Source of the DNA: Macrostomum lignano
Lineage: Eukaryota
Length of the DNA: 64,000 nucleotides
Reading direction: 5' to 3'
NCBI GenBank assembly: GCA_002269645.1
Contig: NIVC01002081.1
Coordinates: 1-64,000, forward strand
Both the position numbers and the translations under genes were made by a program. Positions 13,790-39,670 of the stretch are shown one piece after another. The stretch's first letter is position 1. Every line of letters begins with the position of its first letter. Under the pieces are notes generated by a model. The model made no database searches. It worked only from the letters and a program-made list of their open reading frames with translations, and was not told the origin of the DNA.

Positions 13790-14340
13790 AACATACATTG
13801 TCAGCCAGTCAAGCGTGGGGCAATATCACCGGGCGCATTTTAAAGGCCGGGGCGCAAACGTAGGCCGCACCGCCGGCAGTGTCCGGGGCGCCGGCGTCAG
13901 CCAGCAGGCAGTCAACAAAACGCCGAGAACGCGCCTGCCCCCGCCGGTAGGGTGCCTGCAGCGTCAGCAGCAGCACCTCCGGCACCGGCTGTGGGCAGTA
14001 CGTCTCGGATCGGATGATATGGCCTACCAGCTGGAGTCGCCGACGGCGCAACATATCGCTGGGACGGGACAGGCTGGTGCGGCGATAGCTGTGCCGCATT
14101 GGTGACTCGCTCGTAGCTGATTTTGAAGGCGGCGCCAGCAGACCAGCGTGCGCCGCATCGACCAGCTGGTCGAGCGATTCCGTCAGCGTCCAGGTCTGGG
14201 CGTTGTACAACAGGACAGTCTCGATCACCGCCTGGAACAACGCCGTCCTTTGGCGGTCAGGCAGGACCTCGGACTGCAGGACAGCCCTCACGGAACGGAA
14301 GGCAGCCCAGGCAAGTCCACGCTGCAGTGTTGCCACCACT
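13790..14340 (-). mobile_element. 5'-truncated RTE-clade non-LTR retrotransposon 3' fragment
   Basis: LFQAVIETVLLYNAQTWTL...LRRRRLQLVGHIIR...RRGQARSRRFVDCL matches the C-terminal region of RTE ORFs (LLYG.ETW, RRL.W.GH); a frameshift is present. Confidence 0.8.
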
Positions 14341-14699
14341 GCGATTTTTTATCGCTCAGCGATAATTTTGTCCATTTTTCTCGTTTCCTGCGATTTTTTG
14401 TGGACACCAGTCCTTTCAACTTTTTATCAAGTACTGAGCTGTGTTTCATTTTGTGCTCAATTTAAGTGCCATGAACGTCATCAATATAGCGTGAGGCTGT
14501 GCAAGCCTCCGGTTTTGAAGCTCGGCGAAAGGAGATTGAGCATGCTGCGGTCGAGCGAGCACTGAAGAAAGCTGCCGACGAAACGGCTCGGCGAAAGAGA
14601 CAGACGGAGTTCAGCGCTCGATCTGTCCTGCCAAAGGTTCCAAAGAAAAAAGGAACATCCACTGAAGAGCCTGCAGTTTTGCCTGACTGGCGCAGTGCA

Positions 14700-14790
14700 T
14701 TTTGCCCGCAAGTGAATTGCCCGTCGAGATTTGCCCACGAGTGAATTGCCCGCCGTGGTTTGCCCGCAAATGTTTTTTTCCAGCAGCGCA
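14700..14790. repeat. Short relic of the TTTGCCCGC 14-15-bp repeat family
   Basis: ATTTGCCCGCAAGTGAATTGCCCGTCGAGATTTGCCCACGAG resembles the left end of the 44410 element. Confidence 0.6.
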
Positions 14791-15723
14791 TTTGGCCACG
14801 TGGTAGACTTTGTTTGAATTGCCCTCCAATCCTTAATAAGTCTTAACATTCAAACACATGGAGGTAAGAGTAGAATTTTTAAAGAATTTGACGAATTATT
14901 GATAGAATTAGGTAATTTAACAATGCAAGCCATTAATAAAATTTCTCTGTAAACAGAAACAAATTTTCTACTACTTTCTTACTACAGAGTAGAAATAAAA
15001 ATTCTCAATTGTTCTTGTAGATTTTTTGCAACGCAACGCATTTGTTGTAATGAGAACTACACGAATTGGACACACGAATGCAAACAGTTTATAGAATAAT
15101 TTTATGTAAATGTATGTACAAGTTGTGCACAGAAAATTGGTTGCGTAGTGGGTCAGTATAATAAAAAATGATTATTGTAGCACCATATAATATGTACAAA
15201 AAAAACAAGTGACCGTGATCCACGCATTAAAACTTGTCAACAGCTATTTGGCTTCTCTATTGTATCGTTGTTCGCATGTACTAAGTGCAGATAAAAACAA
15301 TGTTAGTGCGGCGTGAGTGCAAGTCATTCTTTAAGGCATTATAGAAAGTGAAAATTTTTATGCTTAGAAATAAAACTTAATTATCGTTTATAAGCAAAGC
15401 CATGTAGTTCACAGTAAGAAGACAATACCTCGAAAGGTAATTATCATAAATTATAAAAAGTCCAAAGCAGTTAAAATCGAACTAAGTTAAAAAAACAAAA
15501 TATAGTTTTGAGTATTCAACGAATGATTCAAAAAGTTGTTAAGAAATTTGTTGACGTTTTAAACAAAAAACATTATTAATTAATAAAAATGATAGGCAGA
15601 AAAATGCTGATGCCGCTAAAATAGTCCTTAACACGTCTTGAAGGCGGACTGAAGAAACAGATTATAAAATAAACTTGAAAGAGGGAAAGAGAACGATATA
15701 GCAAATAAGTTATCAATTCAGCT

Positions 15724-16283
15724 TTAGTCTGTTGGTGACACATCATTGGCAGCACTGCTGGCACCTGCAGCAGCTGGAGACACCAGTCGAACTGGTTTGC
15801 TAGCTTTTCGCCTCGAATGCTGCTGCTGCTGAGGTTGGTCTGTCTGCTTCGGCTCTTGCTGTGCAGCTGTACTCTTCCGCAAATCTAGCCCATCGCCCTC
15901 CTCTGCAGCAGCCTGCTCAGAGGATCGATTGACTCCGAGAGTTGCCGCAGAACCAGATGCAATTTTATTTCTCATCCGATGATTATGAAACCAGTTCGTA
16001 ACGGTTTTCACTGGCAATCGGAATTCGTTAGCCAATTGTTCAACTGTGCCAACGGCTGGATAAGGCTCCCTGCTGAAGGCCTCCAGCAGTATCGCCTTCT
16101 GCGTCTCGGTGAACATGTAACGCGACTTCTTGCTCGGAGTCGCTCCGCCCTGAGGCGAATCAACGGAGCTGGCAGCGTCGGAGAAAATCTCGCTACTGTT
16201 GTTGTTGTTATTGTTGCTATTGGGCAGTGCAGAAGTGAGAGTCAGTGAAGCCGCCGACGTTAAGTTTCGGACAGATGATCCGG
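15724..16283 (-). CDS. cut: cut last exon: CUT-class homeodomain
   Basis: [54 protein letters not shown]; the WFHNHRMR helix 3 is typical of cut. Acceptor TTCCAG at 16284. Confidence 0.95.
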
Positions 16284-19200
16284 CTGGAATAATTCAACAA
16301 AACAGATATTGTCGAATTGTCTATGACACTGTTTGTATCTGTGTGTACCTAGACCTTGGGACTACTTAATGCTACTTTGAATTCACCTTTTAAAGCTGAA
16401 ATATAGTTCGAACAGTTTTTCAATTCACGATAAACGTTCAATAGATTCAAAATGGAGGTCTTCTATTGAATTAAAAGAGTAGAATGAATGCTAAGGCCAA
16501 TTTATCTGACTTCTAAGTTATCTGCACAGTAATACACTAATTTAATGCTTGTCATTTTCAACTTGGAATATTCCTAATAGGGTGAGGAATAAAATCACAT
16601 TTGCATTAGTGTAGTTGTCTATGGTCTAATGTCCAGATGGTTATGAAATTAATTCGGTGAAACGAGAATCGGCGAAATTAGAATTTCGGCGAAACGAGAA
16701 TCGGCAAAATGAGATTCAGCGAAACGAGAATCGGCAAAATGAGATTCAGCGAAAAGAGAATCGGCAAAATGAGATTCAGCGAAAAGAGAATCGGCAAAAT
16801 GAGATTCAGCGAAAAGAGAATCGGCGAAATGAGAGGTACCCATTTCTTGCCACAAACAAATTTAAGATTTATAAAATTTTATAACCCCCTTTCTGGACTG
16901 AAGCTTTCTAATAAAAAACGGAGACTTCTGTGGGTCCGCGACATAGACAGTGCTTGGCAGTATAAGACCGTATTTAAAAACATCTCAAGAACAAACCCGA
17001 TTCTAAATTGTCTGGAGTTGTCTGGCAGTGAGAATTCATGGTAATGGCCATAGACATGAGCGGCGATAGCCATGACTCAATTTGGCCATTACCATGTTTT
17101 CTCACTTCCAGCTAACTTCATTGGTCAATTCGTCCATCAGGATACGTGTGGGAAGGGGGAATAGTGTGTGGGGCGAAACCCCCACCAACCATAGACTATT
17201 TTATTTTACGCTCATAGACTAGTTCGTTTTCTAAAATGATATCCCGGTAAATTGTTTTATGGTCAATTTCAAACAATGACTGGTCATTGCTTGAATGTCA
17301 TTGCCTTAACGTAAATTACCATAGACATTTTGAACAATGACATCCTAGGACAGACCCATCGCGAGACATCAAACACTATTCAGAAACCAATAATGCACTG
17401 TTTTGTAGACTATTAAAGAAATTTAACGCTCTTTAAAAAACGCTGACAACCCTCTTCGGACGTGTAAAACCTTTCGAGGGTTCTGGTTTGAACTTTAATC
17501 CTAATTGCTCTGTCAAAGCGACCCTGACTTGTTCGTCTCAGCATAGAAATCCTGCACCTGAATCTAACATTGACTGGTGGGCAGTGCGTAGCATTAACGG
17601 ATCATTGTTAAAGAAGCAACAAACCTTCCAAAGATGACAGAGTAGTCTGATCCGGACTAGCTAGCCACAGGTTAAGCCGCAGGTAGGGCTCCCGACCCTT
17701 AGCGCTGAGCTGGTTCCAGGGCACTGGCGACTCAAGCAGTTCAGCGGTGGCCTCGGCTGACATTCCGAGCACTGACTCGCCAAGCTGCGCGTAGTTCAAC
17801 TGACTGCGGTTCATTGCCTGTTGAAAAGGAAAGCAAAATGTTTATTGGGGATATGCGAATAAATTCGTGAAGTTTAAAATTCAGTAATTGAATTATAGTG
17901 TCAATAGGGTCAATTGACCCCAGGATCAGCTATTCAGGTGTCAATTTTATTAATAAATGATGAATTACTTACCTCCAGCACAGCGTCGCACACCTGCTTC
18001 GTGTCAATGTCAAGCGTAATGCTGCTAGCTAGCTGGGCAATGGCGCTATCTGGGAGGTAACTGGCCGCATTGGCGCAGATTGACGACATTAGCGTCGTGC
18101 CAATGGGATCGGCGCCCGATAAGACCTTCTGCTGCTGCTGCTGCTGAAGTTGAGCCAAAGCTGCCAACGATGATGCCGACTGTCTCGACGGCATCGGCGG
18201 ATTGTTGACAATGAGGCGATTCAAAGCCTCGGGATCGTCAACGAATAGGCGCATTCGGATGAACGGTTCGCGACCTTTCTGCGTCAGCATCGACCATTGC
18301 TTTGGCCTGGCAAGCAGGTCGCTAACTGAACCCTGGCTGAGCCCGAGGACCTGAAACGCGTGGTTCAGTTGCTATGTTGGAACAAATCATAAAAAGTCAT
18401 CGTGAAGCTACCAAGGACGACTTAACTAGAAGGATGCGGAACCTAAGGAACTATATTACTTGAAGAATTGTATCTCCTGTCTACAGATCGAATAATAATT
18501 GATTGCATCTTTATTTAAAACGTGTTTAACTCGAAGGTTTAGACTTATATGAGGTTAGCTTTAGAAAATTTCTAGTCAAGATGTACCTAACAATATAGAG
18601 TAATTCTAAGAAACATACACTAACTTGATTGGGATTAGAATCATTAGATATTCAAAAGCGGGGCTTCAATTATTAAGTATCATATTGAACAAAAAGCATC
18701 TTATTAAAAGTTCGTATCTTCGTAGTTGTATTCTTTCGCGTAAAACCATCCATCATTTTTTAGGAATAGAAGTTTCCCATCCTACTTAATTCGCCCTTGG
18801 TGGCTACAGCCTACAATACAGTCAGAATTCAATTTTACCTGCTCTCCAAACAGTCTCTGACTAATGGAGTATTGATTAAGCAACTCCTTGACCTCCTTGA
18901 CAAGGTCCTCAGTGTTGAGATCCCAGTACTTCTCCACTTGCTCCTTAGTGATTGGCGGTAGAAGCATTTTACTCTGCTTCAGTGTAGACATGGAACTGCT
19001 TGGTGAAGCCCCTAGACTCAATGTGGGAAGCTGATGCGAATCATCCAACTGCTGCTGTTGCTGCTGCTGCTGAAATTCACCAGGTGACAGGAACTGCAGC
19101 GACTGACTGGAGTGCCGCTTCCTCTTCCGCGATGCGCCGCCCACCTGGCTCCGCTGATCGGCGCCGTCGTCAACTTTGACGCTCTCCATAATGAGAGAGT

Positions 19201-20453
19201 CAGATTCCAGGGCGCGCATTTCCAACGCTAGACGCTCAGCCGTCTCTTTGTCACCGTCTGCGTTGGCCTGCGCAAGAGCGCTTCTAAGTTGTTCCTATCG
19301 AATAAGGTAGTGACGTGCTCGCTAATGAATACCTGTTTCACTTCTCAAACTGATTATGTAGTTTTAAAATAGCGTATCTTTCTGCTGCACCTTTTGTCAT
19401 TAAAAACACTATTTACGAGGACTTCGTATGAGTTATGAAATATGCCACAGTCTCAGGACAAACATCAAAACTTCTTTCTAAGTTATATACCTCAGCATTA
19501 TCGACGGCTGGCAGCTATATTCTTGTTTTTAAGAGGTGTGCAACAAGAAGCTTTCGTATTTCGTACCTTCGTATTCTAAAACTTTGTGTAATTGCGCTCT
19601 TCTTTTCTTCGGTAAAGGGAATTTCACCTTGTGTATTTATATTCCTACTGTAGTAAATATTGTATTGTATAAAGTATTATTTACCTGGTAGATGCCTCGC
19701 ACAATGTCCCGCGTGGTGCCCTGCTGCCCGGTAATGCCAGCCGAGTCATCCTTCTGTGCGCTTGCTGATGCAGGCATTGGCGGAAGCAGCAACGGCTGCT
19801 GCTGCGGCTGAGGCGCGTCCATCACCAGATTACCAGAGAACTCGCCCGACTGGCTGGATGACGGGCTGGCGTCGCTTTCAAGTGTTGCTTCAGCAACGGC
19901 GTTCGAGTCATCGGCTGCCCCAGCTGTTGCAGTTGGTTGCAGAGTCAGCGAGAGTTGCACCTGCGGTTGTGTGGACTTCTTCGGCTGCTGCTGCTGCTGA
20001 CGGCGAGAGTCCAGACTCAGTAAAGACAAGGGCTCTTGATCCATTGATGAGGCTTGCTCGGAAGCTGCAGTATGTTTTTTTAGTAGTTCTCATTACTTTC
20101 CATGTTTTCAACAAAGGATGAAAACAACATACTATTAAAGGGCAATAGAAATTCATAAAAACATCATTACCCTCACCTTGATTTCCTCTCTTAATAGGCG
20201 CCATGGCTTTCAGAGCTAATACGCTGCTCTCGTCGGCAGCCCAAATGCTCATCTTTCTGTAGCTTTCTCTACCCTTCTCCGTCAGTTTATCCCATTGTTT
20301 TGGCTTGCTCAACAATTCGGACACGGTGCCCTGAGATAGGCCAAGCACCTGTTTAGCAAACAGTCTCTGGCCGATGTTGTGCCGACTGAGTAGAACTCGT
20401 ACATCAGCAGCGATCTGGTTCGTATCGAGTGGCGGCCAAAGCATTGACTGCTG

Positions 20454-20484
<31 letters not shown>

Positions 20485-20595
20485 TGCATGTTCAGCAGTT
20501 CTAATTGTTTGTCCTTATCCACCGATTTTTTCCCTCGCGAACTGGCTGTAGTTGAAGAAGACGGCTTTAGAGTTGGGTCCTTATTCGGTTGCTGC

Positions 20596-20627
<32 letters not shown>

Positions 20628-22518
20628 TTGCTGCTGCAACATCTTGAGCATATCAATACCATAGGCTCCGCCGGCGGTTGCAGCCGAAGTGAATGCAGAT
20701 GTCAAGTCAAATGCTGCACCACCAATCCCAGAGGTGCCCGGCGTAGCTAATAAGAAAGGCGCCTGCAAACTCAGCAGATGCCCGATCTGCATCTGATCGA
20801 TCAAGGATGTCGCCGAGGGCTGCTGCTGCTGCTGCTGTTGCTGATACTGACTGCTTGCTGACGTTGACGGAATGGCTGTTAAAGACAACCGAATTTACTA
20901 CTTAATTAGATCTAATTAAGTTAATTAGACAGATTAAACTCAGTATAAATAACACCTTAAGCTCGACGAGCAAAAAAAGTATTTTCTCTTCGTTGCAATT
21001 TTCCAATTTTTACTACGACCTAACTATTAACTGTATATAATTCATACCATATCAAGCAACTATCTAGGATTGAAACAAAATTCTCTACGGTAAAGATTTA
21101 AAACTACTGAATAAATAGTGCGCTCAGCTTCGTGGCCTCAAAATTATGTCAAAATTTTAAATGAGATTTCAACCATATTCGATGTACATGGACAGGTTAG
21201 CAACCACGTAATTAAGTTAACAATAATTACTTGTACGCACCTGAACTAGCGCTAACTCGGGTCTGTGGCTGTCCGAAGTTGCCAGCCTGCTGACTACTGT
21301 CTGGTTCTAGTTGAACTTTCAAGTCTGACGCCTGTTAAAGTACGCGCGCATGTAGATTTGATAGGATAGTCTCAGTTACAAGGTACAGATGGCACAATGG
21401 CACAATGATTAAATTATAATAATCAACAAATTACGAGCGTACTTACCTTCTGACGTATTCCAATCAGACCTTCGAGAAGTTGGTTAACCTGTTAGAAATC
21501 GAAGTGATAGACAGGGAATAGGTTTGTTAATAAAGCAATTTCACGATTGGGCTGCATTCAAAGTACAGAATTGTATATTGTATTATAATTGGAATAAGAG
21601 TTAATAGTTTACTCGTAAACAAAATCAATAAAGAAATAAAACTATGGTAACCATTTTCTTCGGTCTGTCACGTAATAATCTTTTTCAGAGTTTCGTCTTC
21701 TTTTTAAAGTTTTAAAATATTACTAAAAGTAGCAATGCAAAACACAAAGCATCGAGCTAAAATCGCTCCTTTACCTCAGATGCTTGAATGCAGTATCCAT
21801 CAGCGCTTTTCAAGCTTTCTTCTTGAATCTTAACGAGATGAGATTCGATTTGAGAAGCGTCCTGTGTGGTAAGGATTGTAAAAAATGCATTTATTTCGAA
21901 GAAATCTGGGAAAACTCATTCAAAGCCGACTGGACTGTATTATACTCACCCTTTCGATGCACTTTATTAAATCTTCAGGAGACAGCAGCAGAGGCATGTG
22001 ATGATTATTGGCACTGTATGGAAAAAATTAATAAATTAATTACAGGCTTAAAGTCAGGCTTAGACTTAACACAATTTTTTTCAAGGCAACTTACGAGAAC
22101 AGTCCTCGACCATTCAAAGAATCTCTGGATGTACCTTGTTTGGATTTACCTGCAAGGATGATGCAATAACAGATTGATAGAAAATAAATATAGTTTACCA
22201 AGGTATAGGATTAAATTTTAGGCCGGCATGTTGTATAGTGATAACAACGCCTCTGGGACTGGTGCCTTTGCTTTTTTGCTTTTGGCAAAAGTTCGTGACG
22301 TTTTAGCGCAATCAGTTATACTAAAATAAAAGCTAATAATTGATCTTTGAAGTCTAAAATTTCTGGAATAGGCGTAAGGAACAAAGGTTAGCCGGAGGAG
22401 GTCGAGGATAATCTAAGTGTTTTAAAATAACTTCAACACTTTACTCACATTTTTCCGAATCCATCTTCTTTTCATCGTGCAAAGTCAAAAGTGAGTTGTC
22501 GAATAGAACTCCAGTCAT
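15724..22518 (-). CDS. cut: cut/CUX homeobox transcription factor, 12 coding exons, ~1024 aa, three CUT repeats plus homeodomain
   Basis: Exons (minus): 22449-22518, 22095-22149, 21950-22013, 21775-21861, 21447-21488, 21241-21331, 20177-20875, 19685-20064, 18839-19294, 17973-18350, 17625-17817, 15724-16283. All introns are GT-AG with consistent phases; total 3075 nt, open to TAA. The five or six small N-terminal exons are less certain than the domain exons. Confidence 0.9.
16664..16830. repeat. Intronic minisatellite, 30-bp unit (two 15-bp halves) GAAACGAGAATCGGCAAAATGAGATTCAGC
   Basis: About 5.5 copies inside the last cut intron. Confidence 0.9.
17625..17817 (-). CDS. cut: cut exon: body of the divergent CUT repeat 3
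   Basis: [52 protein letters not shown]; CAG acceptor, GTTTGT donor, phases match both neighbours. Confidence 0.88.
17973..18350 (-). CDS. cut: cut exon: second half of CUT repeat 2 and start of CUT repeat 3
   Basis: [36 protein letters not shown]...[13 protein letters not shown]; GTAAGT donor. Confidence 0.95.
18839..19294 (-). CDS. cut: cut exon: coiled segment, polyQ and first half of CUT repeat 2
   Basis: [11 protein letters not shown]...[27 protein letters not shown]. Confidence 0.93.
19685..20064 (-). CDS. cut: cut exon: low-complexity linker
   Basis: Open frame ...MDQEPLSLL...[11 protein letters not shown]; splice phases match flanking exons. Confidence 0.85.
20177..20875 (-). CDS. 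cut: cut exon: polyQ tracts and CUT repeat 1
   Basis: [64 protein letters not shown]; three CAG/CAA runs. Confidence 0.95.
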
Positions 22519-24471
22519 GATCTGCAATTCAATTCCAAACGTTGTTGCTAGCGACCAGACCAGCAGTTGTCGAACTGAAAATTAGACAACAGAAGCTTTA
22601 GCCTTATTATAGTGAGATTAAAAACAGCCTTTCGTTCCGTGTCACTCAGTCTGGGTTCGCTTGGGGGAGGTGGGTGTATTTTCGATTTTGTATTCAGTTC
22701 GGCGCCATATATATGTACACAAAAATACGCCGCAACAGAAGACAAGCAATAATTTTGCCTTCCTGGAGCTGACTAGTTCTGTCCCCGATTCATGCCCGAG
22801 CCGGCCTCCTCACTCCTTCAGCCCACCTCTCCAATCCACTGACTGACTTTGCTTATGTGGCTGGAAAACCTCTCTCTCTCGGCAGCCCACCCCACTCACT
22901 CCATTAACAGCCGATCGCGAGCTATTGATTAAATGGAGGAGGGGTGGACTCTCTGCAGACGGAAAACTTTGGACTGACTGAGGAGAGGAGGGGGGTTGGA
23001 ACTGACTGACTTGGGGTCGGAGGCGTGGGGAGGGGTTGAACTGAAAAATCGTAAAATGATAGTCAAGGCAAAAGGGGGTTTGGCTTGGTGTACGGGCCCG
23101 CCTGATTTTCAGTGTCGCATACAGTTTGCGTTGTGTGTGTGTGTGTGTGACTCAATAAAATTGGGTATTGGTTCAGTCAGTCAGTTTCGCCAGCTCCACC
23201 TTTCCTTACCAAAGCCCCCCAACCCCAACTCCGGCTCCGCGCACGCGCTCTCTCACTTGCACAAGGTCCAAGTGCAAACACATGCAATGGCAATGCTAGT
23301 TTTTAAAATGGCTGACTGAAGGGATGAGGGGGGCTTTTGATTTTGGCTGGGTGTAGATTGCGTTACAAGGAAAATCGAGAATAGACAGTATTAAATAGGG
23401 GCTGCAAGCCTGCAACACTCAAGGCAAGGTTTTTCAAATTTATAAGCCCCGGGCCCGGTCCCACAATCTCTTGCCGATGTGTGTACATTAGCGCTAGAAC
23501 GCTGAATTGTGCTGTGCGCACGCGCTCCCAACCCAACTAACTATATCTTTAATCCAATAAGAGTACTGAAAAAATGACGCTTTACTTTGAGGTGTTGCAG
23601 TTCTTATTAAAAGAAGAGGTTTATTTCTTTGCTTTTTTCTCTGCTGTCGATCGAAAAAAGACTATGCAATGAGAAAAACAGACATACACAGATAGAGTGG
23701 AGGCAGTTTTAAGAGGGTTATTTGGACTAACGACTCGGTTATTTTGGTTTTTTGATTCGGCATATTTAAATTGCACACAAGGAGCTCACATCCGCATTCC
23801 CCACCATTATGCCATTCCATAACCACAGTTTTGGTAAATTAAAAACCTCAAACATCAACTTTCATATTCTCTTTTTAACTACAATTGCTTGTAAAGCATT
23901 TCTGTATTTTCGCTTCGTCAATCGTCAACATAAAAATAGTCAATAACTGCAGATAACGATTTTCAGCCAAATTGTTTACACCACCTTTTGTTGGCCCACA
24001 TGTACTCAGCAACATTGAAAAGTCGCCACTCTTTGCGCTAGACAGCAATTTCTTTTGGAACTATCCGGAAATACGAGAGAACTGAGGGGTAGCTTTAATC
24101 CGTCCAACCCTCGCACACCGCTCCCCCACTTCATTCCTCAACTCTAGTCGGCCGCGTGGCGTAGATGAGTTGCATCACTCGCAAAGATTGAGAGACTTTG
24201 CCTCATTGCCTGCACTCTCAAAAGTGGCGACCACAGACGGAATCTTCTGTGATGGCGACAGAAGATTCCAAGAGAGAATAGTCCAAGAGAAATTGCTTAC
24301 TGACGCATAGAGTGCATGGCGACTTTTTAATGTTGCTGAGTATTTGTACAAATTTGTGCAAACCAAAGCAGTAGTTCCAAGCCCAAGCGTCGTTATCCGT
24401 CGATTTAAAATGTAGAAGTACATATTTGTCAGCTTCGTCGATTGACATCGGAAACGTCGGCCCGACGTCGG

Positions 24472-24653
24472 CAGGGGCGGATCCAGAAAATTTTTGAGGG
24501 GGGGGGCAAGCTACACCAAGCACTACAACCCAATTTTGGAAAATAGACCTTACATAGTTACAGGGCAAAAAAGTATTGTCCAATTTTTTTTGGCCTCGGC
24601 TGAGGGGGGCCATAACCCCCTTGCCCCCCCCCCCTACCCCCGGTCCGCCCCTG
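24472..24653. mobile_element. 182-bp hAT-type MITE
   Basis: TIR CAGGGGCGGA(T)CC / GG(T)CCGCCCCTG; 8-bp TSD GACGTCGG at 24464-24471 and 24654-24661. Confidence 0.88.
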
Positions 24654-27600
24654 GACGTCGGATTGCTGTATACGAATTTCAATTCCAAGAGACGCAGAAT
24701 TCCACTGAAATAAACATAGCCCTGATGTTCCCTTCTGTTTTAGTGACCGCGCCGAAAACCACTACATGGAAACCTTGATAGAGTCGACTCAAAGGCTAAA
24801 GAGCACCGCGAAAGAGCACATCAAATGGAATAAAAAAACTTTTTCAGACTACTGTTTATATAAAACTGATAATTCAATAGCAATTAAAGCAATTAAATAC
24901 AGGTCCAGCCTTCACCTTACCTTCTTACTTACAGATCGATTATGCTAACGCAATGGATATAATACCAACGATTGTACGAGCGTATTTATGCGAAAATGAA
25001 ATGAAAAGCAGTACAAACTTCTGATAATATATGAGCAGTGTTTATTTCAGATAAATACGCTCATTTAGTTCGTATAAGTTTGTGCAGAAAACTCTTTCTG
25101 CTGCTCAGCGATTCAAACGCCCGAGCGGGCGCCGAGCAGTTAAATAAATCGAAAAATACCCCCGGCCAATTGCCCTCTCGCGTGGTATTGCATTCCTATT
25201 GCACTAAGCGTTCAAGAGTCGCTCTCGCTCCACCATTTTTTACTCCTGACATGAGGGGGCTTGCATTTTCCAATTGGGTATAGGGCCGGCTGCGAGTGCG
25301 TCAATACCCTCAATACCCTCAATAGGTGAAGCGCTCTCTGGTCTAATTAATAATAGAATGCTCTTCTTCTCCTGGGGGTGGGCTCCTTGCCAATGAACAA
25401 TGAACACGGCGTATTGGTAAATACAGATCGTGTGCATTGATCTGAAGTGGAGAGAGAGAGGGCTTACGCTGGCAATAGCTCGCGCACAATGCCATCGGGC
25501 AGTGGGGTCACCCCTTCCTGCCGCATTGGATTGAATCGGAATCCGAAAGACTGAGGAGAGTGAGGTTGGCGAACTTGTCTCTTATTCAATTCTTTTCCTG
25601 CCTTTTCCTGAGGCAGCCGCCTCTGCACAATTCAGATTCAGAATAAGGGGAGGAAGAGGTGGGGTTAGTTGTTAAGGCAGGACGTCGAACCGAACCGAAG
25701 CAAACTAATATTGGATTTGATTTGCGCGCCCCGCCCGAGTCTCGGCTCGAACAGAGAGAAAGAAAATGACGTGGGTTGCTCTCAGCCAAGGAGAACTCAG
25801 ATGAGAAACTGGAGAGTTGTCAACTCTTCCCCAAACCCTCGATCATTTTACATTACATGGGTATCATAAGTCTCCGTATAGCCCGTATCCTACTTAAAAT
25901 TCATGGCATTATCCAGAGTAATATTGTAAACTGGTTTCTGCAGAAGTTTTGAGCCCAAAAGTTCTACATTTTGAACTTGACGCGTTCTCAAAAGTTGTTA
26001 TTGCAGAATTTGTTTTTAATTTCTCCTGGACCGATTTGAAATTTTATAGTGACGTTTGACATTTGAAGTTGATTGATTCAAAATGGTTCTGTACTGAGGA
26101 TAAGCAACTTATACGAGCGTACGTATAGGCCGGCACTGCCTCCCTCTCAAATCCTGCTCAATTGCAATGAAGCCTTTCTATGGACTCTACTTGTTCCCAT
26201 GAACAGTTTTCCTTCGAAGCCTTCTTATCTTAGGTCAACTCACACACTCAGACTGTTTCTTTATCGCTAATCACCTTCTGTCATACTTAATCATCGTATC
26301 ATGCTTACAAAATTGTGGAATAATTAAGAATCCCAAAAATTTGTAATTTTTATGACGAGGTGATGAGGAATCAGCTAAATCAAATAGAATTATGCATGAT
26401 AGCTTTATCAAAAACGTTTTCCGTGCAGTGCAGACTCATACAGATTGCTGTAACAAATGCCTAGAAAATCTCCAGATTTTCGTTCTAAAAAGTCTCCTCG
26501 TCTTGCCGTTCCGATCGTCACCCACCCGCCCTCCAATTTCAGAGCACACGGAAAGAAAAGCAGCCGTTTTTACCTCGAGAGGGTTTTTTCCAGTTTGAGA
26601 GGAGAGAGAGGGTTGCCACAGCGTGACTCTCAATTGAATCGATAAAATGGTTTTGCAGTCTTCCAGTCGCTCGTACACCTAGGCAACTATAAACTCGGCT
26701 TTGTTTTGTTCGCATTGCAGATGAGGCGGGGACAGAGTTTATAGTGTATAATTTTAGGCATGCTTCAGCATGGACTGACTCACTTGTATTCGATTCAATT
26801 CAGCCCCCACTACCCTTATTGAATTGTTGAATTCTTGCCTCAACTCTATTCTGCTCAAACTAAATTGCTTTTCTCCACTAGTTTGTGTACAATAGCTATA
26901 AACTGCGTATAGATGGGTCTTCGAATTATAAAACGAACGCGATAGCATTCTATTTTGCTTGTCGAATATATGCATACATACTATAGGGCTCTGTATTGTG
27001 ATGAAAGACAGAAAATATGCAATGCATCAAACTATAAATCACTGTTTGCGTCAACAGTTGATTAATTTTGGCCAACAAGACGCAGGCCAGAGAGAGAATT
27101 CAGTTTTCAATTGAAGTTTTCAGCTATATGTAAATATATATAGCCTCGGAAGTTTTCTTATCGAAAAGCTTTTCTTCCAGCATTGAAGCTCTGTAGGTGT
27201 GCAATGTGCATGTTCGGGTTAAAGTATGCTATTAATCGAAATTATCAAATAAAACGCACAAAGTTCAGTTCGACGTTTTGCTTTGCATAGGAATCTATAT
27301 CCAGTAGGCAAGCGCAGTTGAGAAAGAATAAAACCAAATTGCGTATATTGTTTAATGCGCATCGATTTTCGAATATGATTTGATAGCTCATAAGTCCGAT
27401 GAAGTACTCGATAAGTCCAAACTATAGGCTTAGCTAACTACTGTGTATTCATGTACGGGTATTCAATATTCGAATATTGCACCGCTGCATCATCCGCACG
27501 CTTTTATTTTAACAGTTTTCCACTTAAGTTCTTTTCGACTCGCGATAGATCACTTACGCCGTGATGGAGAGCCATCCAGTGGAGATAAATTCTCTCTGGA

Positions 27601-28399
27601 CTCGGATATTATCGTTGTTGTTATTGAAACTTTCATAAGTTTGACATAAGGCCCCGTGTACAACAAGCATGGCTTGTACAACGTAACAACGAAATATTAC
27701 GCAGGTAAATGGTAATAGAGCACGAAAGATACTATATAGCGGCTATAGCCACAATGAGTAGCGATCTCAGGCCTCAAAGGCACCTTCATGATTAAAAACC
27801 TTTCCCATGACCCCGTCCACAGGGCCCGCAGCTGAAATTATGGCGCTCAGCTCAATGTCCACAAAGACACGCCGTTTCTGTTACGTTACTCCCCCATGAA
27901 AAGTTTAGCAGTCTACGCCAATATAAATGAAAATGATAGATCAATGTGCCTTGTGTACAAATTATGCAGCTTAAATTTACTAGCAAAAAGTTGCTTTCGC
28001 TTGACGCTAAAAAGATTACGATGCAATAAATAGAAATAAAGTAGTATCGTAAGACTATGTACAGTGTCGACAAAATTGCCCATCTAAAAATAGGGGGTCT
28101 CCTCCAGAAACTACTGACAGCTCGACTGTTATCACTACTTGGACGTGGTATCGAGGTACGTGGTGCGCTCACGTAGGAGATAGGGGCGCCAACCAATACA
28201 TCAAATGTTGGCACCCCTAAGGGTTGCGGCCCTCTCCAGTTTAAAATTCCTATACAAATTAAGCTGATTCCTCTTCTAAATCAATTTCATTTAGCGATTG
28301 ATTTTTGGTTTTGAACATTTAAGACCCAACCTAACGGTTCGATACGAGAGAAACTTACATCAATTTGCACGTAAACCATGCAACCTTGCACGTATTGTA

Positions 28400-32445: not shown

Positions 32446-35400
32446 ATGTCTTGCCCCCAAGGATATGACAAAGCTACTATCTTTATAAAGCCAATTGCTC
32501 ATGATGCCACGTAAGTTTTCAAAGTCATATCTGATGTATTATACTTTTTTAACCTAATTAACTTATAAATATTGATTCTTTTGATCACTTTGCAAGCTTA
32601 ATAATTATTTATACTTAATGCAATTTTAGTTACTTATTTATATAGGTTATTTTATAGTTTAAACCTAGATATTAGGCTATGCAATGATATATACAAGCCA
32701 CAAAGTTGTTCTCCTAATTGCTTAGACTAAAAGGATAATAAAGGTCTATGATACAGCAGCCACTAGGCCTAGGCTAAGTACCACTTTCTGTTCTATCTTT
32801 TATTGGCCTTTGACCCAGACTAAACATGTGTCATCCCACAATTGAAAATCCTAGTTATATCACTGATGTGTTCTATATTATTATTTGAGCCTATTAAGCC
32901 TATTGCCTATTGAAATAAATTTAAATCCTAATAAGTTCATAGTTTTGATTTTGCTTTGCTTGCTAAACTATTATTTCTTATATTATTATTGATTATTTCA
33001 ATGAAAGCTAGGCCTATTATTTATAAATTATCAAAGCTTTGTGTTTTAATATAAAATTATTAAATAATATTTTTGACCCTATTAATATTGCACACCATTT
33101 TTTCTTTAAAATATTTTCATTAAATAATATACATTGACTAAGTAAAAGTTGATAGAATATGATATTGTAGTAATGTATAAAATGTTTAAAAAAGTAGTAT
33201 GAAGACGCACATGTCTTTTTGCCACCAGTGAACGGGCTTCTTTTTAGATGTGGGTCTTCATACTACTTGATAAACCTAGTTTTGTACCGATAAAAAAGAA
33301 CTGAGAATCTCAAGAAAAATTTAAATCTTTACTTATCCTATTTTTCTCTGTCTGTTCTGTTTTTCTCCTTTCTAATCTCTCTCTAGTCTCCCCTCTCCTC
33401 GCTTTTCTCTCACCGTGCCTTATCTTTATCTCTTATCTTCTCTTTTCTCTTCTTCATCTATTCTTTTTTATTTCCTCTCTTATCTGGCCCGCAACCATGA
33501 ACTGGAATCTTCTACAATAGGCCCTCCTCGATCTAAAAAAATTGTCTAAAGTCTCTAGAGCGTAGCAGGGTTATACAACTCCATTTTAGCTGGTTGTTTC
33601 GGCAGAAGATCCTCTAGCTTCAGCTTAAGTGCTTGGAAAGCCAGGCCAGTCTTGTGGGACCTAATACTCATACTGACTGATACTATCAATCAGATAGTTC
33701 ACTAAACTGACATAAGATACCTTCCGTAAGCCTCTTCTTCAACGGGGTTGCAAAGAAAGCTATAAATAAAGTTATTCCAAAACACTATACATACCTACTT
33801 AATAAGCCACGTATCGCCTGACCTTTTAGCCTGGGAGGATGTACACGTAGTGACTTGGAGCTTGCCACCGGCCAAACTTTGTACTGGGCTTGCAATTCAA
33901 ATGTGCCAGTTAAAGAGCTAAATTTAATACAAAATTCTAATCACGTGATGCTCGTTTATTGATCTAATTTTCCTTGGTCTGTGCGTGAGTCGCATGAAGC
34001 TCTTATTACATGCCCTCCAAACCAAGCCGCCAAGCCCTCTCGCGTTGCCACAACCCCACTTGGAAGGGACGGGTGTGTACATTATATGTACGAATATTCC
34101 TTCCTTTCCTTTCCTTTCCTTTCCTTTCCTTTCTAACCAGCTTAACTTAGCCTAACGCCAAAGCTATGCAATGCAAGCAATCGCATGCAAATGCAGATTA
34201 TGCAAATGCAGCTTAATGTGATGAATTTCGATGCAAAAAGGCATTTTTTACATGAAAAAAACATTGAATTGTTATGAAATTCAAGAAATTTGTTAAATTA
34301 ACTAGATATAGAACACTGTGCATTGGTTTCAGTGCAAAATTCCTACCATTTCCAGTTTAAATACCTGTTAGTCCTGTTAGACCTGTTAGTACTAAATTCC
34401 AGTTAGTTAAAGAACTAACATAAAAGTAAAAAGTCTAGTTTTCAGTTTTTTATCGATAATTTTTTACCCAATGAACTGAATCTCTAGAAATTGCACACAA
34501 ATAGGCCTCGTTATGTGGGAAATCAGGCGTCATTAAAATATTGCCATCCTATTGCGTTTTTTGCCTGATTTCAAGCAAAATATTAAAAAATCACTACTCT
34601 GATCGATTTCTAATCACTTTTGACACATGAGCACTTGTTGCAGACACCCAAAAACTTGGTCAATTTTAGCCAGACATTAGTACAACTCGTTGCAGTATCC
34701 GCATTTGATCTACCATTGTTTTAAAAATTTAATCACCCATTTTTCTGGCACCCAATCAGCCAAAAATCACAAATTATCGATTTCTGATCAATTTTTCAAC
34801 CCGAAAGCAGCAAAATCAGACGGCGGCAATTTAAACCAATATAGTACAGCAACTATGCTATAGAAATTTGAAATCGGCTTATTCGCACCATGCTCTCAAA
34901 ATTATAATGAGCAATAATGCGAAAGTCGTGATTTTTTTAAAAATCGATTTTTGTCAATTTTCTCAGCACTGCACAATTGTAGGGAAACAAAACTCTAGAC
35001 ACTTGTAGATTTTTGCATTGCGCATCCAACTGCACTGCTTTGAAGCCTAAACTCAAAAAGCTTCGTAGGAAAAATTGGCAAAATAATAAAATAAAGGTCA
35101 TTTTTTTACCCAAAAAACTATCAAAACTGCATAAAGATGCCGAAATAAATTAAAGTGCCATACACCATTTTGTAGGAAATTTAGTTTTACAACTTTGATC
35201 CTCAGATGTCGAAGCCGTATCTCGTAAGGTGTACCAGAATTTTGAGATCTCCCAGAAGCACTTTTGAAAAAATCATCTTTCCACTTAATTTATGGCTTAG
35301 TAATAAAATCTCTGCACTTAAAAGTATATTCATTTGATAGATTTAAAAGTTTTCTATCGATTGACACCTCACTCAACTCAATTGGTGCAGTGGTTGCAAA

Positions 35401-38400
35401 ACAGGAGCATTTTTGGCGAAAAAACGTGAAATTTAAAAATGCATGGGAGTCTAACTTATTTACTCGCCCTCGGCCCCTAGTGGGGCCTCAGGTTCTCTCG
35501 CTCTCGCCCGACGCCGCCTTCGGCGGCACCAGGCTTGGCTCGTTCACTGGTGGAACTAGAAGTATTATATTTATTAAGAGTTATAGAAAGATATTCTAGT
35601 TCCTAAAAACCATTCTCTTTTAAACTGTATTTTGGGATAAGAGCCAAAGATTCTAGATAATAAAAGCTTAAACTTATTAAAACTTCAAATATATGGCTAG
35701 TATGAGCTGCCTATTGTAATTTGGTCAGTTTTTATCATTGATGGGTGAAAGCATATCTAGATATAATGGTTTTTTATGAAATGATACTTACTATTGCTAT
35801 CAAACAAGATTTAATTTGCATCAAATCTAGTATATTTAAGCAGTTTTCCACTAGGCATGGATTGAGAAGTTTTTTGAGAGAGAAAGCAAGCATACTAAGC
35901 ACTATTGGAAAATAGGATTGGCATAGTTGCAAACCAAAATAGTATAGCCTATTTTTTGGCCACAGCCTGCTAGTTGTCTGCTAGTTGTAAAAGTTATAGC
36001 TAATCAAATTATATCTCTATTTGTGTGATGCAAAATATATTGCTATGCCTTGAATATGAAAATAAAATTTGTTAATTCTGTTTAGTATTTTTATTTAAAA
36101 TATAACTCTACTTTTTATATTAAAAAAATTGAATATTTAATTTGATTGATTATTCTAAAGTAAAAAATGTAACATAGATGCTATTCAATCTAATATTTTT
36201 GTACCTTTTTACTAAAGTTACCTAATAAAACTTCACTTGCATTTTAGTGTGGAAGAGCTACAACTCTACTATGAACAATTTGGAGACATTCTTTCAGTAA
36301 ATATACCAGCAGATCGACTGACTCAACAATTCAAGGGCTATGCATTCATTGAATATCCTTTTGTTAAAATTTTATTTGATACACCATTTGATAATTCTTA
36401 AAAATAACGCTAAACCACATTTTTATTACTGAATGAGTTGGCATTCATCCCCCTGATTCTTTTGGTCTGGCAGTGTCAGTCATGCTTCAAAATTCTTGTA
36501 TTAAACTTGAAGCAGGGGCGTCGCCATGGATTTTATGGGGGTACAAAGCCAAGAATTCAACATGTACATATACATGACTAAATACATGACTAATACATGA
36601 ATAATACATGACTAAATGAGTGTTGTTAGCACTCATCTTAGCGCCGCAGCCATTCCTTTTAGCGCCGCAGGCACTCATTTTGGCGCCGCAGGCACTCATT
36701 TTAGAGCCGCAGGCACTCATTTTGGCGCCGCAGGCACTCATTTTGGCGCCGCAGCCATACCCTTTTTAGCGGCGCTTTCATTTTAGAGCCGCAGGCACTC
36801 ATTTTGGCGCCGCAGCCATACCTTTTTTAGCGGCGCACTCATTTTAGAGCCGCAGGCACTCATTTTGGCGCCGCAGCCATACCCTTTTTAGCGGCGCACT
36901 CATTTTAGAGCCGCAGGCACTCATTTTGGCGCCGCAGCCATACCCTTTTTAGCGGCGCACTTATTTTAGAGCCGCAGACACTCATTTTGGCGTCGCAGGC
37001 ACTCATTTTGGCGCCCTGAAGAAAAACTATTGATTACCACGACTAATAAAGGTGGGGTGGGGAGGACAAAGCATTGACATGTCCTCCCAATAGCTTTTAC
37101 TGTGGGACATGTCCCCCCCCCGGTGGCGACGCGCCTGACTTGAACCATTATTTCCCCTATTACAAGGTTAAGCATTTTTAATTTCAAATCATCTGTCTGT
37201 CATCATTTCAAATTTCTTGACACATCGGACCACTATAGGAATAGCCAGACTGCTATATGATTGAAGTTTTTCTTGCCTTGTTTTCTATTGAATTTAGTTT
37301 CCTTAACCATTGAGCCTTAAAACGCATCAATTATGGCCACCCAATCAATCTGCTGTCATCTCATATGTGCTTCTTGGCTGTCTGTCTGCACATTTCTTCA
37401 CCCCGACGATGCCGCAACAGCTAGAGATCGCACCAACGGATCGATTCTGTTAGGCCACAATGTTACAGTGGAGATCGCCGAAGGACCCAGAAAAAGTGAG
37501 TCTGTCAAGTTTTATGACTTCTGATTCCGTCTTTTTGAATTTTTGAGTCATCACGCGAAGTTGTATGTAATATTTTACTGTTAACATCAGACTGCACACA
37601 AGCAATAAGGTTTAAGCTGTTTCAACTTATTTTCCAGCAATCCAAACATGTCGTTCAGTGCCGCAGTGTTTTATCACACAGTGTAAAACCAGTGTAAAAT
37701 TACAGCGCGCAGTCAGTTTGATCAGCGGTAAATCAGCTCCATGAATTGCATCCTTCTTGAGCGCATGGATTTCGCAGTCACAGAAAGCATTGGATTGTCT
37801 TATAATTTATGAGTTGATACTGCATGCTCTCTCTTTCTGATAAGGGAACTGGTGCACTTTAATAGTGCTTGACTCAGAAAATCAGAAACTTCATGGTTAC
37901 AGTTCAGCAATTTTCTCATCAGTTTCCGAAGGTGACATGCAGAGTTTAAAACGCAGAACGTAGTGCGTCCTGTACAGAAATTTGCAGTCGTGCAGTTTGC
38001 CCCATGTGCATTCGTAATCATGAAGGGTTCTTCTTGAATGCTAAACAATGTAAGCGATTCGATTATATCTGAATTTTTTACTTTCATATTTTTAGAACAT
38101 TACGCTTTTAGTCTTTATTTAATCGGTCTTTTTGTTTTTGATAGATTTGCTATGGCTTAGGAGGGGGCCATCACAAGCTCGAAAAATCACATCGTTGAAA
38201 AGCATCCACCATCACAAGCTCGAGAAGTCATATGCTCGAAAAATTACATCGTCGAAAAGTTTAGCAACCACCGTCATAAGCTCAAAAAACACAAGCTCGA
38301 AAACTCACATCATCGAAAACTGATTTAGCAACCACCATCATAAGCTCGAAAACTCACATCGTCGAAAACTGATTTAGCAACCACCATCATAAGCTCGAAA

Positions 38401-39670
38401 AGTCATATGCTCGAAAAATCACATCGCCGAAAAGTTTAGCAACCACCATCATAAGCTCGAAAAATCACAAGCTCGAAAACTCACATCGTCGAAAACTGAT
38501 TTAGCATCCTCCATCACAAGCTCGAAAAGAGTTAGGGTTAGTGCTTGTGCCTTAGGGTTTAGGGTTAGGGTTAGTGCCTTAGGGTTCAGGGTTAGGTTAG
38601 AGTTGGTGCCTTGGGGTTAGTGTTAGAGCTAGAGATGGTGGTTGCTAAATCAGTTTTCGACGATATGACTTTTCGAGTTTGTGATGATGGTTGCTAAACT
38701 TTTCGACATTGTGATTTTTCGAGCTTATGATGGCGACCCGCGTGGGAAGAGTCCCAATATCTTCGAAATAGCAAACGGGATTTAGATCAACTATATTGCT
38801 CTAGATTTAATTTTAAAGCTAATTGATTTAGTTTTAAAGCTAATTGGATTATTCTAAACTGACACTGTCAGTTTTGTGTAAACTTGAAGCCTGTGTTTCC
38901 CATACTTACTCCCATTCCCATCTTACGTACAGTTGTATACTACTGTTCCCCCCAAGGGAGAGTATTCAGCTGCCTGCAGGAAGGAATGTACGAGTATATA
39001 CATTACTAGTGCTCCCACTGTAGTACCCTTTAAAGGTGTTATGTCGTAGTTTCTCACGCACCAGGGCCCTTGAACGAAGGTATTTACAGACTCTTCATTG
39101 AAGGTATTCGTAGTTGCGCCCACGGCAAAACCCATCTACAAGCTTTACATGCTAATAAAAACAGGTGACTTTTTAATATAGAAAGCATACTTCAAGGTCG
39201 TGTCCAAATGCCTGCAATTAAACTGCAACATCCAAAACAAATCTAAAACAGCGCCAGCTGAAATGCAGCACCGAAGAGATGTTCGACGCCGATTTCAAAG
39301 TAGTCGCGACTATCGCGGCCGTTCGGATAGAAGCTATCATCAGCATCGGTCTTCGTTTGGCAATGCCGGCAGGCATCCCCGAGACCAATACAGATCATCT
39401 GAGCAGGCGCATCGCCGACCGCAATTTGAGCGGTCGCGTTCTCGTCGACGCGAGTTCGTACCCATGAGAAGACGACACATTGAGCCAATTATTCGTGTGA
39501 GCCCGTCCACTTCGCCATCTGTGGACGGTTCTCAGTCTCATAAGCGATCGGTGTCCAGGTCGATGTCTAGGTCTAGGTCTAGATCAAGGTTTGGACGCAA
39601 ATTCGAACGAGATTTGCGCTCGATCGAACGGTCGCGATCTAATTCACCGTCGAGACTGGAGTCTCGTTAG
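32446..39670 (+). CDS. srsf10: SRSF10/SRSF12-like SR splicing factor (RRM + RS domain), 4 exons, 230 aa
   Basis: Exons 32446-32510 (MSCPQGYDKATIFIKPIAHDAT), 36248-36352 (VEELQLYYEQFGDILSVNIPADRLTQQFKGYAFIE), 37392-37495 (FLHPDDAATARDRTNGSILLGHNVTVEIAEGPRK), 39252-39670 (TPAEMQ...RSRS...). 693 nt open. RNP2/RNP1 and the G.RKTP..M motif align with the SRSF10 family. Confidence 0.85.
33490..34123 (+). mobile_element. Probable decayed non-LTR retroelement 3' fragment ending in a (TTTCC)n tail
   Basis: Coding-like but interrupted sequence ending in about six TTTCC copies; lies in SRSF10-like intron 1. No diagnostic motif. Confidence 0.3.
36353..37391 (+). other. U12-type (minor spliceosome) AT-AC intron, 1039 nt
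   Basis: 5' end ATATCCTTT (canonical U12 donor), 3' end AC; joining GA|A TTT restores KGYAFIEF; U12 branch consensus TTCCTTAAC at 37299-37307. Confidence 0.88.
36513..37137. mobile_element. hAT-type MITE with internal 21-bp and 63-bp tandem repeats
   Basis: TIR CAGGGGCGTCGCCA / TGGCGACGCGCCTG; TSD ACTTGAAG / ACTTGAAC (7 of 8); internal (GCAGGCACTCATTTTGGCGCC)n. Confidence 0.82.
38162..38739. mobile_element. Foldback MITE with TCGAAAA-unit arms and a degenerate (TTAGGG)n spacer
   Basis: GCCATCACAAGCTCGAAAAATCACATCGTTGAAAAG is inverted as CTTTTCGACATTGTGATTTTTCGAGCTTATGATGGC; TTAGGG/TTTAGGG/TTCAGGG run at ~38530-38625. Confidence 0.78.

Follow-up and report, generated by a model that had tools for sequence, protein, structure and literature searches.

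Does the interval from 36353 to 37391 of this DNA hold an intron of the minor, U12-dependent class within an SRSF10-family gene, and if so, how old is that intron and how closely does it keep to the rules of its class? The window, by which we mean the whole 64-kb stretch analysed here, is from Macrostomum lignano (a protein search returned matches of 99-100% to M. lignano proteins), and it contains an SRSF10-type gene for a 230-aa RRM and RS protein in four coding exons. The parts that matter for the question are as follows, with a slash marking splice junctions here and below.

32446-32510, + strand: coding exon 1, 65 nt; MSCPQGYDKATIFIKPIAHDA plus 2 nt, with RNP2 (IFIKPI) inside; followed by a U2-type donor, GTAAGT
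36248-36352, + strand: exon 2, 105 nt; preceded by AG; ends ...ATT GA in phase 2, within codon 7 of RNP1 (KGYAFIE)
36353-37391, + strand: intron 2, U12-type AT-AC, 1,039 nt
36353-36361, + strand: minor-spliceosome 5′ splice site ATATCCTTT, a perfect consensus, identical in 3/3 homeologous copies
37390-37391, + strand: 3′ terminal AC of the productive intron; ...TGCAC in the context CAC/ATTT, as in orthologues (TAC in homeologue L001)
37392-37495, + strand: exon 3, 104 nt; FLHPDD...EIAEGPRK; followed by a U2-type donor, GTGAGT
39252-39670, + strand: exon 4; preceded by AACAG; TPAEM linker, Arg/Ser-rich tail and stop codon

The AT-AC join and its support

Joining 36352 to 37392 leaves the RRM and its RNP1 intact (KGYAFIE/FLHPDD), and the resulting protein has a single, N-terminal RRM (Pfam RRM_1 at residues 12-81, E=1e-14) and an RS-rich C-terminal region encoded by exon 4. 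The linker across the exon 3/4 junction reads GPRK/TPAEM, where the SRSF10/12 pattern is G-D-R-K-T-P-x-Q-M. The GenBank protein BOX15_Mlig005216g1 is exactly the AT-AC-spliced CDS and, on contig NIVC01001737, AT-AC joins give the GenBank protein P0001, residue for residue. The M. lignano GenBank annotation was derived from RNA-seq and transcriptome assemblies (PMC5730564); use of the 36352^37392 junction in mRNA is thus supported indirectly, through an RNA-seq-derived annotation. When alternative GT/GC-AG introns were enumerated, every one that preserved the ORF deleted RNP1, and no GT/GC-AG pair kept it; the sole other intron boundary consistent with the mRNA is a one-base shift (TA..CA).

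An earlier note on this DNA, made from its letters, had proposed the U12-type AT-AC intron, and all of its statements about the sequence proved correct: the perfect donor, the AC terminus, the exon sizes and a site shared with orthologues all speak for that assignment. It had also supposed that annotators admitting only GT-AG introns would mis-model the gene, probably leaving it undescribed here. That is not supported for M. lignano, where BOX15_Mlig005216g1 is already correct, but the concern is well founded for older annotations of Lottia, Tetraodon, Helobdella and Capitella, in which the gene models carry spurious residues at the homologous junction.

The first bases of the intron match the extended U12 5′ splice site, /ATATCCTT(T), and its interior matches the branch-site consensus TCCTTAAC as TTCCTTAAC. 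Each of ATATCCTTT and TTCCTTAAC occurs once in the 64 kb, counting both strands, where 0.8 matches of each would be expected, yet both of these sole copies fall within the one 1,039-nt intron, correctly ordered and on the coding strand; scaled to the length of intron 2, the expectation for TTCCTTAAC is only about 0.006 copies. Because order, strand and intron all agree, and because the donor falls at the exact codon and phase of the orthologues, the pairing of the motifs is not a matter of chance. The donor, TTCCTTAAC and the AC are moreover kept in 3/3 homeologous copies (the window, L001 and L002), while other parts of the intron diverge. At other RTATCCTT sites in about 130 kb of M. lignano DNA there is no coding context, and thus no further U12-type introns were found there.

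We therefore give very little credence to the view that the motifs are accidental or the copy dead, the locus being a pseudogene or its junction an artefact of annotation. It is true that about 0.8 copies of either 9-mer, taken by itself, would be expected in the window and that the M. lignano genome is highly duplicated (PMC5730564), but all three copies have an intact ORF, the window and L002 differ at 12 coding positions but in only 4 amino acids, the gene model is derived from RNA-seq, and nine animal species have exactly homologous sites.

Orthologues and the age of the intron

The comparison took in nine species: Macrostomum, Lottia (L003), Capitella (L010), Helobdella (L007), Asterias (L006), Hydra (L008), Dysidea (L005), Tetraodon and the tardigrade Ramazzottius varieornatus (L009). 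In 9/9 of these a 105-nt exon 2 and a 104-nt exon 3 flank an intron at the same codon and phase (RNP1 codon 7, phase 2), and in 8/9 (Macrostomum and 7/8 others) that intron has an ATATC[CT]TT donor and an AC or AT end. The 65/105/104-nt exons and the split of RNP1, which the earlier note had likened to SRSF10-family genes, do have counterparts in SRSF10/12 genes ranging from sponge to fish, and the gene structure together with the linker agrees with that of the other eight species. Lottia, Capitella, Helobdella, Asterias, Hydra and Dysidea agree with Macrostomum in exon lengths, position, phase and ATATC[CT]TT donor, and in an acceptor of the form YAC/AT. The proposed great age of the intron is borne out by the U12-type introns at the identical site in seven other animals, a sponge among them, from which it follows that the intron predates Metazoa; with identical flanking exon lengths throughout, it can be dated to the root of the animals or earlier.

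The ninth species is the exception. In Ramazzottius an intron stands at the same position and phase between exons of 105 and 104 nt, but it is 97 nt long and runs from GTAAGC through a pyrimidine tract to CAG, where Macrostomum keeps a U12 donor and an AC end. Judged from its sequence, this GT-AG intron is a U12-to-U2 conversion, one such conversion thus being documented at this site.

The Macrostomum protein itself is much more divergent than the SRSF10/12 proteins of the six invertebrates listed above. Its RRM is 26-27% identical to SRSF10 RRMs. Outside M. lignano, its top single-sequence matches are to plant SCL30 and SRSF2, an SRSF10-like protein ranking slightly lower (E 7e-8 vs 6e-5), and when the whole library was searched with the protein by HMMER, only its own copies and multi-RRM proteins came back, with no orthologues from other flatworms. 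The SRSF10/12 orthology that we propose rests mainly on gene structure and on the G-x-RKTP-x-x-M linker. Taking these observations together, 36353-37391 is very probably the U12-dependent AT-AC intron 2 of the M. lignano orthologue of SRSF10/SRSF12, descended from the same intron as its counterparts in the SRSF10 genes of sponge, cnidarian, annelid, mollusc, echinoderm and vertebrate. It is a real feature of great age and belongs, as might be expected, to a known class; its one oddity is the distance of its branch-site motif.

A displaced branch-site motif

The interior of intron 2 contains the following features.

37299-37307, + strand: U12 branch-site motif TTCCTTAAC, the only consensus copy in 64 kb; putative branch A at 37305/37306
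37370-37378, + strand: CTTCTTGGC, 13 nt short of the acceptor and at the position of the branch site in orthologues
36513-37137, no strand assigned: inserted element with 14-nt terminal inverted repeats (CAGGGGCGTCGCCA / TGGCGACGCGCCTG) and a flanking direct repeat, ACTTGAA
36629-37015: tandem array in the inserted element, with a 61-nt period and a 21-nt sub-period
37118-37340, + strand: conserved block within the intron; homeologues differ at 1 of its 223 nt
37322-37323, + strand: AC dinucleotide lying 17 nt beyond the putative branch A; candidate U12 acceptor at canonical distance

A U12-type branch site normally lies 10-20 nt upstream of the 3′ splice site, with an optimum of 11-13 nt (PMC8199999). 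In the orthologues the branch motif is 9-12 nt from the exon in six and 27 nt in the leech, but in Macrostomum a spacer of 84 nt separates TTCCTTAAC from the productive 3′ splice site. The earlier note rightly reported the motif within the intron but overlooked this distance, which breaks a rule that defines U12-type introns. At the usual place stands the A-less CTTCTTGGC, which resembles the Asterias/Hydra branch motif TTCTTAAC with AA replaced by GG and which reads CTTTTTGGC in homeologue L002; it looks like a degenerate copy of the branch site at canonical distance. No consensus U12 branch site is present within 55 nt of the productive acceptor, and TTCCTTAAC falls outside the branch-site search window of intronIC (-55..-5), so pipelines restricted to 55 nt from the acceptor may under-score intron 2.

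A fold joining the distal branch site to the acceptor is not favoured (minimum-energy z of +1.06 and +0.91 against shuffles), and changes between paralogues break the weak stems of the tested fold and do not compensate for one another. An internal GT-AG intron shortening the distance between TTCCTTAAC and the acceptor was rejected, there being no AG 3′ of any GT in that stretch; local duplication as the source of two branch-like motifs was likewise rejected, the only repeat present being one of 13 nt and 85%.

The inserted element is found in all three homeologous copies, with arrays of differing length. The block at 37118-37340 includes the branch-site consensus and also a pyrimidine tract with an AG ending at 37297; the intron flanking it has 3-8 differences per 100 nt between homeologues, and within the final 51 nt there are 4-5.

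It is conceivable, with the balance of probability clearly against it, that minor splicing is itself unusual here and that either: a branch at TTCCTTAAC reaches an acceptor 85 nt away; or TTCCTTAAC drives splicing to the AC at 37323, with the productive acceptor using the A-less region. Long-reach branching, if real, would break a tight distance rule that has been considered intrinsic to U12-type splicing, and the route to AC 37323 would be an independently evolved autoregulatory switch, internal to the minor spliceosome, in an SR-protein gene; the near-invariant 223-nt block would then be the element controlling such splicing.

The second of these can be put as a dual-acceptor minor intron, in which a canonical intron (36353-37323) competes with the weaker, productive acceptor at 37391 as a flatworm-specific switch of unproductive splicing. 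We raise this tentatively, as the less probable view. TTCCTTAAC and the AC at 37323 are within the optimal range of each other, and the near invariance of 37118-37340 beside the more changeable last 51 nt counts in its favour. An mRNA using AC 37323 is predicted to gain 68 nt and to shift frame, stopping after 99 aa, and unproductive splicing is the means by which mammalian Srsf10, and SR genes generally, autoregulate (PMC7244321). However, no annotated protein or isoform has the AC 37323 junction, although the shared 56-residue N-terminus would have let the protein search detect one, and gene conversion could explain the conservation among three recent homeologues. A second acceptor would refine our preferred reading, that of a U12-dependent intron 2, and does not exclude it. 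In either case the displaced motif offers an easily tested case for how strict the U12 branch-to-acceptor rule is outside vertebrates.

Spliceosome and comparison with vertebrate SRSF10

Could the major spliceosome remove this intron instead, as a U2-type AT-AC or hybrid intron whose U12-like donor is a relic of lost or waning minor splicing? The 3′ end gives this some colour. U12 introns are typically without a polypyrimidine tract before the acceptor; here pyrimidines make up 17 of the 24 bases at the end of the intron, in a flatworm, whose introns are generally T-rich, and a yUnAy-like CTCAT lies 28 nt upstream of the acceptor, in the region that lacks a consensus U12 branch site. The tardigrade orthologue, too, shows that this same intron can be converted to the U2 type. 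Against this, GA/ATATCCTTT has almost no complementarity of the U1/U6 type, for which a donor such as /ATAAGT would be needed; three homeologues preserve the donor 9-mer without a change; chance is unlikely to have put a perfect TTCCTTAAC into that intron as well; and all four minor snRNAs are retained in other flatworms, having been found in Schistosoma (PMC2770079) and in Schmidtea (PMC6312358). We consider removal by the major spliceosome improbable.

For Macrostomum itself, Rfam searches (at gathering thresholds and at E<=1) found no U11, U12, U4atac or U6atac in the window, L001 and L002, which together are only about 130 kb of the genome. That the M. lignano genome keeps a working minor spliceosome, as the earlier note proposed, is plausible, indirectly, from a gene model built on RNA-seq that requires the AT-AC join and from the minor snRNAs of other flatworms. 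We found no literature on Macrostomum that deals with U12-type introns or the minor spliceosome. An early-branching, free-living flatworm, used as a regeneration model with RNAi and transgenesis, can be added to the animals that still have a bona fide U12-type intron.

If the established pathway holds in this flatworm, the U11/U12 di-snRNP would bind at the 5′ splice site, ATATCCTTT, and at a branch site of the U12 type, and U4atac/U6atac.U5 would then catalyse removal of intron 2; with 36352 joined to 37392, RNP1 (KGYAFIE/F) would be rebuilt to give a working RRM. Minor introns are usually removed slowly. Since the protein needs the intron 2 splice, the amount of this SR protein that is made probably depends on how active the minor spliceosome is, as has been demonstrated for mouse and human SRSF10.

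In mammals it is the minor 5′ splice site of exon 2 that yields the productive Srsf10 mRNA (Meinke et al. 2020, eLife, PMC7244321). A major 5′ splice site farther downstream in that exon competes with it, and there is also an internal poison exon, exon 3, whose GA-rich enhancer depends on SRSF10 (PMC7244321). We found neither a convincing competing major 5′ splice site nor a mammalian-like poison exon in the flatworm intron, where the GT sites after the donor are weak (the nearest, at 36363, reads TTTT/GTTAAA) but the pyrimidine tract with its AG at 37297 and the conserved 223-nt block are present, and the suggestion that the intron is ‘regulated’ was not borne out in that form. At the Tetraodon locus the vertebrate intron 2 interrupts the same codon 7 of RNP1 in phase 2, between exons of 105 and 104 nt, and has the same ATATCCTTT donor; however, 10 nt separate its branch site, CCTTAAC, from the acceptor, against 84 nt for the flatworm consensus, and it ends in AT where the flatworm intron ends in AC. 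In vertebrate SRSF10 and in the flatworm gene alike, a productive mRNA requires the minor splice, and among SR-protein genes it is this one alone, the host of the intron in Macrostomum, for which a coupling of output to minor-spliceosome activity is known from mammals.

Gene structure and the AT-AC junction

The gene model rests on four exons, which are listed here with the other coding elements of the window.

Exons and coding elements in the window
2645-7378, + strand: non-LTR retrotransposon; G+C 57-63%; long ORFs carry endonuclease, reverse-transcriptase and RNase H domains
10445-11401 and 19908-20888, + and - strands: ORFs with a bHLH domain and a CUT (ONECUT-like) domain; neighbouring transcription-factor genes
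32446-32510: coding exon 1, 65 nt, the 65-nt exon named in the earlier note
36248-36352: exon 2, 105 nt, preceded by AG and ending ...ATT GA
37392-37495: exon 3, 104 nt, followed by GTGAGT
39252-39670: exon 4, the last of the model

The spliced window protein (230 aa) differs at 2 residues from the GenBank protein BOX15_Mlig005216g1 (230 aa; 99% identity), which is reproduced exactly by the same four exon joins on contig NIVC01001737; it also matches BOX15_Mlig015740g2 of Macrostomum lignano. The gene is present in three close copies (the window, NIVC01001737 and NIVC01000945), the third copy in the window being consistent with the heavily duplicated M. lignano genome (PMC5730564). In the NIVC01000945 gene range (10001-28343), the model for BOX15_Mlig015740g2 joins exon 3 to an exon far downstream, so that the C-terminus is unrelated (GPRK/SDSVSLFKANRL...), and the normal exon 4 is still intact at 14270-14688; the model describes an alternative transcript or a chimeric one.

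Joined exons 2 and 3 encode VEELQLYYEQFGDILSVNIPADRLTQQFKGYAFIE/FLHPDDAATARDRTNGSILLGHNVTVEIAEGPRK, an RRM (Pfam RRM_1, E=1e-14), and intron 2 (36353-37391) cuts the seventh codon of the RNP1 octamer KGYAFIEF after base 2. The 5′ splice site ATATCCTTT (36353-36361) directly follows exon 2, the intron finishes ...TGCAC at 37391, and TTCCTTAAC lies within it at 37299-37307. Each 9-mer has one match on both strands of the 64 kb, against about 0.8 expected, and neither is significant by itself; taken together they are, since a single 1,039-nt interval contains both, on the coding strand and in the correct order. The position of the donor, on an exon boundary common to distant animals, is likewise significant.

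We enumerated every GT/GC...AG pair near both boundaries as an alternative to AT-AC; those that keep the frame open all remove RNP1. The mRNA sequence is compatible with one other boundary, a one-base shift giving TA...CA, and the annotated protein therefore needs the AT-AC intron. GenBank gene models for the assembly come from RNA-seq processed with STAR, StringTie and TACO, together with a de novo transcriptome aligned by BLAT, and not from an ab initio GT-AG predictor (PMC5730564); through them the AT-AC junction has indirect transcript support. Exon limits, donor, TGCAC end and TTCCTTAAC, all as described in the earlier note, were correct on rechecking. Its guess that the gene would be mis-modelled did not hold for M. 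lignano, since an annotation built on RNA-seq and transcriptome matches the AT-AC join: the intron was already implicit in a correct GenBank gene model. We conclude that the flatworm SRSF10/12 orthologue contains a genuine U12-type AT-AC intron.

Both introns flanking exon 3 contain repeats. A transposon-like insertion within intron 2 (36513-37137), with 14-nt terminal inverted repeats (CAGGGGCGTCGCCA / TGGCGACGCGCCTG) and a flanking direct repeat ACTTGAA, is hAT/MITE-like. Within it, 36629-37015 is a tandem array of 61-nt period with a 21-nt sub-period; all three homeologues have the element, with varying array lengths. Intron 3 holds a tandem array at 38170-38530, with units of roughly 60 nt (…CATCACAAGCTCGAAAA…), mostly missing or rearranged in NIVC01000945.

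The same intron in other animals

SRSF10/SRSF12 proteins from many phyla came up in a profile search, and genomic loci were compared in eight species and one myxozoan.

The intron interrupting RNP1 (class; donor; 3′ end; spacer from branch motif to exon)
Macrostomum (window): U12-type; ATATCCTTT; AC; 84 nt
Lottia: U12-type; ATATCCTTA; AC; 9 nt
Capitella: U12-type; ATATCCTTC; AC; 11 nt
Helobdella: U12-type; ATATCCTTT; AC; 27 nt
Asterias: U12-type; ATATCCTTT; AC; 12 nt
Tetraodon: U12-type; ATATCCTTT; AT; 10 nt
Hydra: U12-type; ATATCTTTT; AC; 12 nt
Dysidea (sponge): U12-type; ATATCCTTG; AC; 11 nt
Ramazzottius: U2-type, 97 nt; GTAAGC; CAG; not applicable

In all eight species (Lottia, Capitella, Helobdella, Asterias, Tetraodon, Hydra, Dysidea, Ramazzottius) the intron follows an exon of exactly 105 nt that has AG upstream, precedes one of exactly 104 nt with GT after it, and interrupts the same RNP1 codon in the same phase. 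This directly bears out the earlier proposal that the exons split the RRM as in SRSF10-family genes. The flatworm protein is itself divergent, with 26-27% identity to SRSF10 RRMs and best matches outside the species to plant SCL30 and SRSF2; the case for orthology to SRSF10/12 rests mainly on gene structure, which is identical, and on the linker (GPRK/TPAEM in Macrostomum versus GDRK/TPxQM in the other species). On these comparisons the intron is at least as old as animals.

Several loci have particularities of their own. The intron of the tardigrade Ramazzottius varieornatus (GTAAGC...CAG, at about 3291-3387), at the identical codon and phase, is a clear U12-to-U2 conversion. In the myxozoan Thelohanellus kitauei (about 3190-3215) the same site holds a 21-nt in-frame GTTATTC...ACAAAG, annotated as coding (VQLFIPLQRFEDP), which may represent a very small GT-AG intron or the fossil of one. 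A further U12-like donor, GTATCCTCC, lies within the AT-AT intron of Tetraodon; it is probably the minor site belonging to vertebrate exon 3, left unused. GenBank models of the Lottia, Tetraodon, Helobdella and Capitella orthologues contain spurious residues at the junction (for example AYIKFKNTFEDP, AYIQYIFEDV, AYIQYPFPFLIQDARD and SYIQYPSFSIDPRD); true AT-AC joins give back RGF[AS]Y[IV]Q/[FY]ED, and annotation appears to have imposed GT-AG boundaries on the intron.

A displaced branch-site motif

The one feature unexpected to a specialist is the displaced branch-site motif. In the U12-type orthologues the gap between the end of the branch motif (TCCTTAAC, CCCTTAAC, TTCTTAAC, CCTTAAC or CCCTTGAC) and the exon is 9-12 nt, the leech having 27 nt; reviews name a branch-to-acceptor distance of 10-20 nt (optimum 11-13) as a functional constraint (PMC8199999). 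The only consensus motif in Macrostomum ends 84 nt upstream of the exon in all three copies, outside the -55..-5 window searched by intronIC (PMC7367187). At the canonical position stands CTTCTTGGC, followed by 13 nt, which resembles the TTCTTAAC of Asterias and Hydra with G in place of both adenosines; the NIVC01000945 copy has drifted further, to CTTTTTGGC.

An AC at 37322-37323 lies 17 nt downstream of the branch A of the consensus motif; its use as acceptor (candidate AC 37323) would add 68 nt and shift the frame, so that the computed protein stops at 99 aa. A fold looping out the 84-nt spacer was unsupported by a folding test, no internal intron that would shorten the distance is possible in the spacer, and a local duplication that would account for the two branch-like motifs was unsupported when checked. 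In Helobdella robusta 27 nt separate CCCTTAAC from the acceptor of the AT-AC intron, beyond the textbook 10-20 nt, so the distance rule is somewhat relaxed in another spiralian.

Between the window and NIVC01000945, intron sequence typically shows 3-8 differences per 100 nt, and the final 51 nt of intron 2 carry four changes specific to NIVC01000945 and one in NIVC01001737. The block 37118-37340, which includes TTCCTTAAC and, just upstream, a pyrimidine tract ending AG at 37297, shows 1 difference in 223 nt between homeologues; a check for repeats ruled out that it is one. Such near-invariance suggests constraint on the distal branch-motif region, but gene conversion between recent homeologues would leave the same picture; the block may be a tract of that kind, a regulatory element or the boundary of a cryptic exon. 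The branch-site displacement is cheap to test.

Minor splicing in flatworms and mammals

We found no literature linking Macrostomum to U12-type splicing. Complete minor snRNA sets are reported from Schistosoma (PMC2770079), U11, U12, U4atac and U6atac are reported from the planarian Schmidtea (PMC6312358), and a large survey places Schistosoma among lineages with minor introns (PMC10639083); retention of the minor spliceosome in Macrostomum would therefore be expected, not surprising, and the donor, perfectly kept in three copies, argues for it.

In mouse and human SRSF10, a major site further downstream, tied to poison exon 3, is in competition with exon 2's minor 5′ splice site under SRSF10 autoregulation (PMC7244321). 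No convincing equivalent of this mammalian-type competing site or poison exon was found in flatworm intron 2; that the intron is regulated, as the earlier note proposed, stays an inference. Intron 2 is homologous to the known minor intron of vertebrate SRSF10 and to those of many invertebrates.
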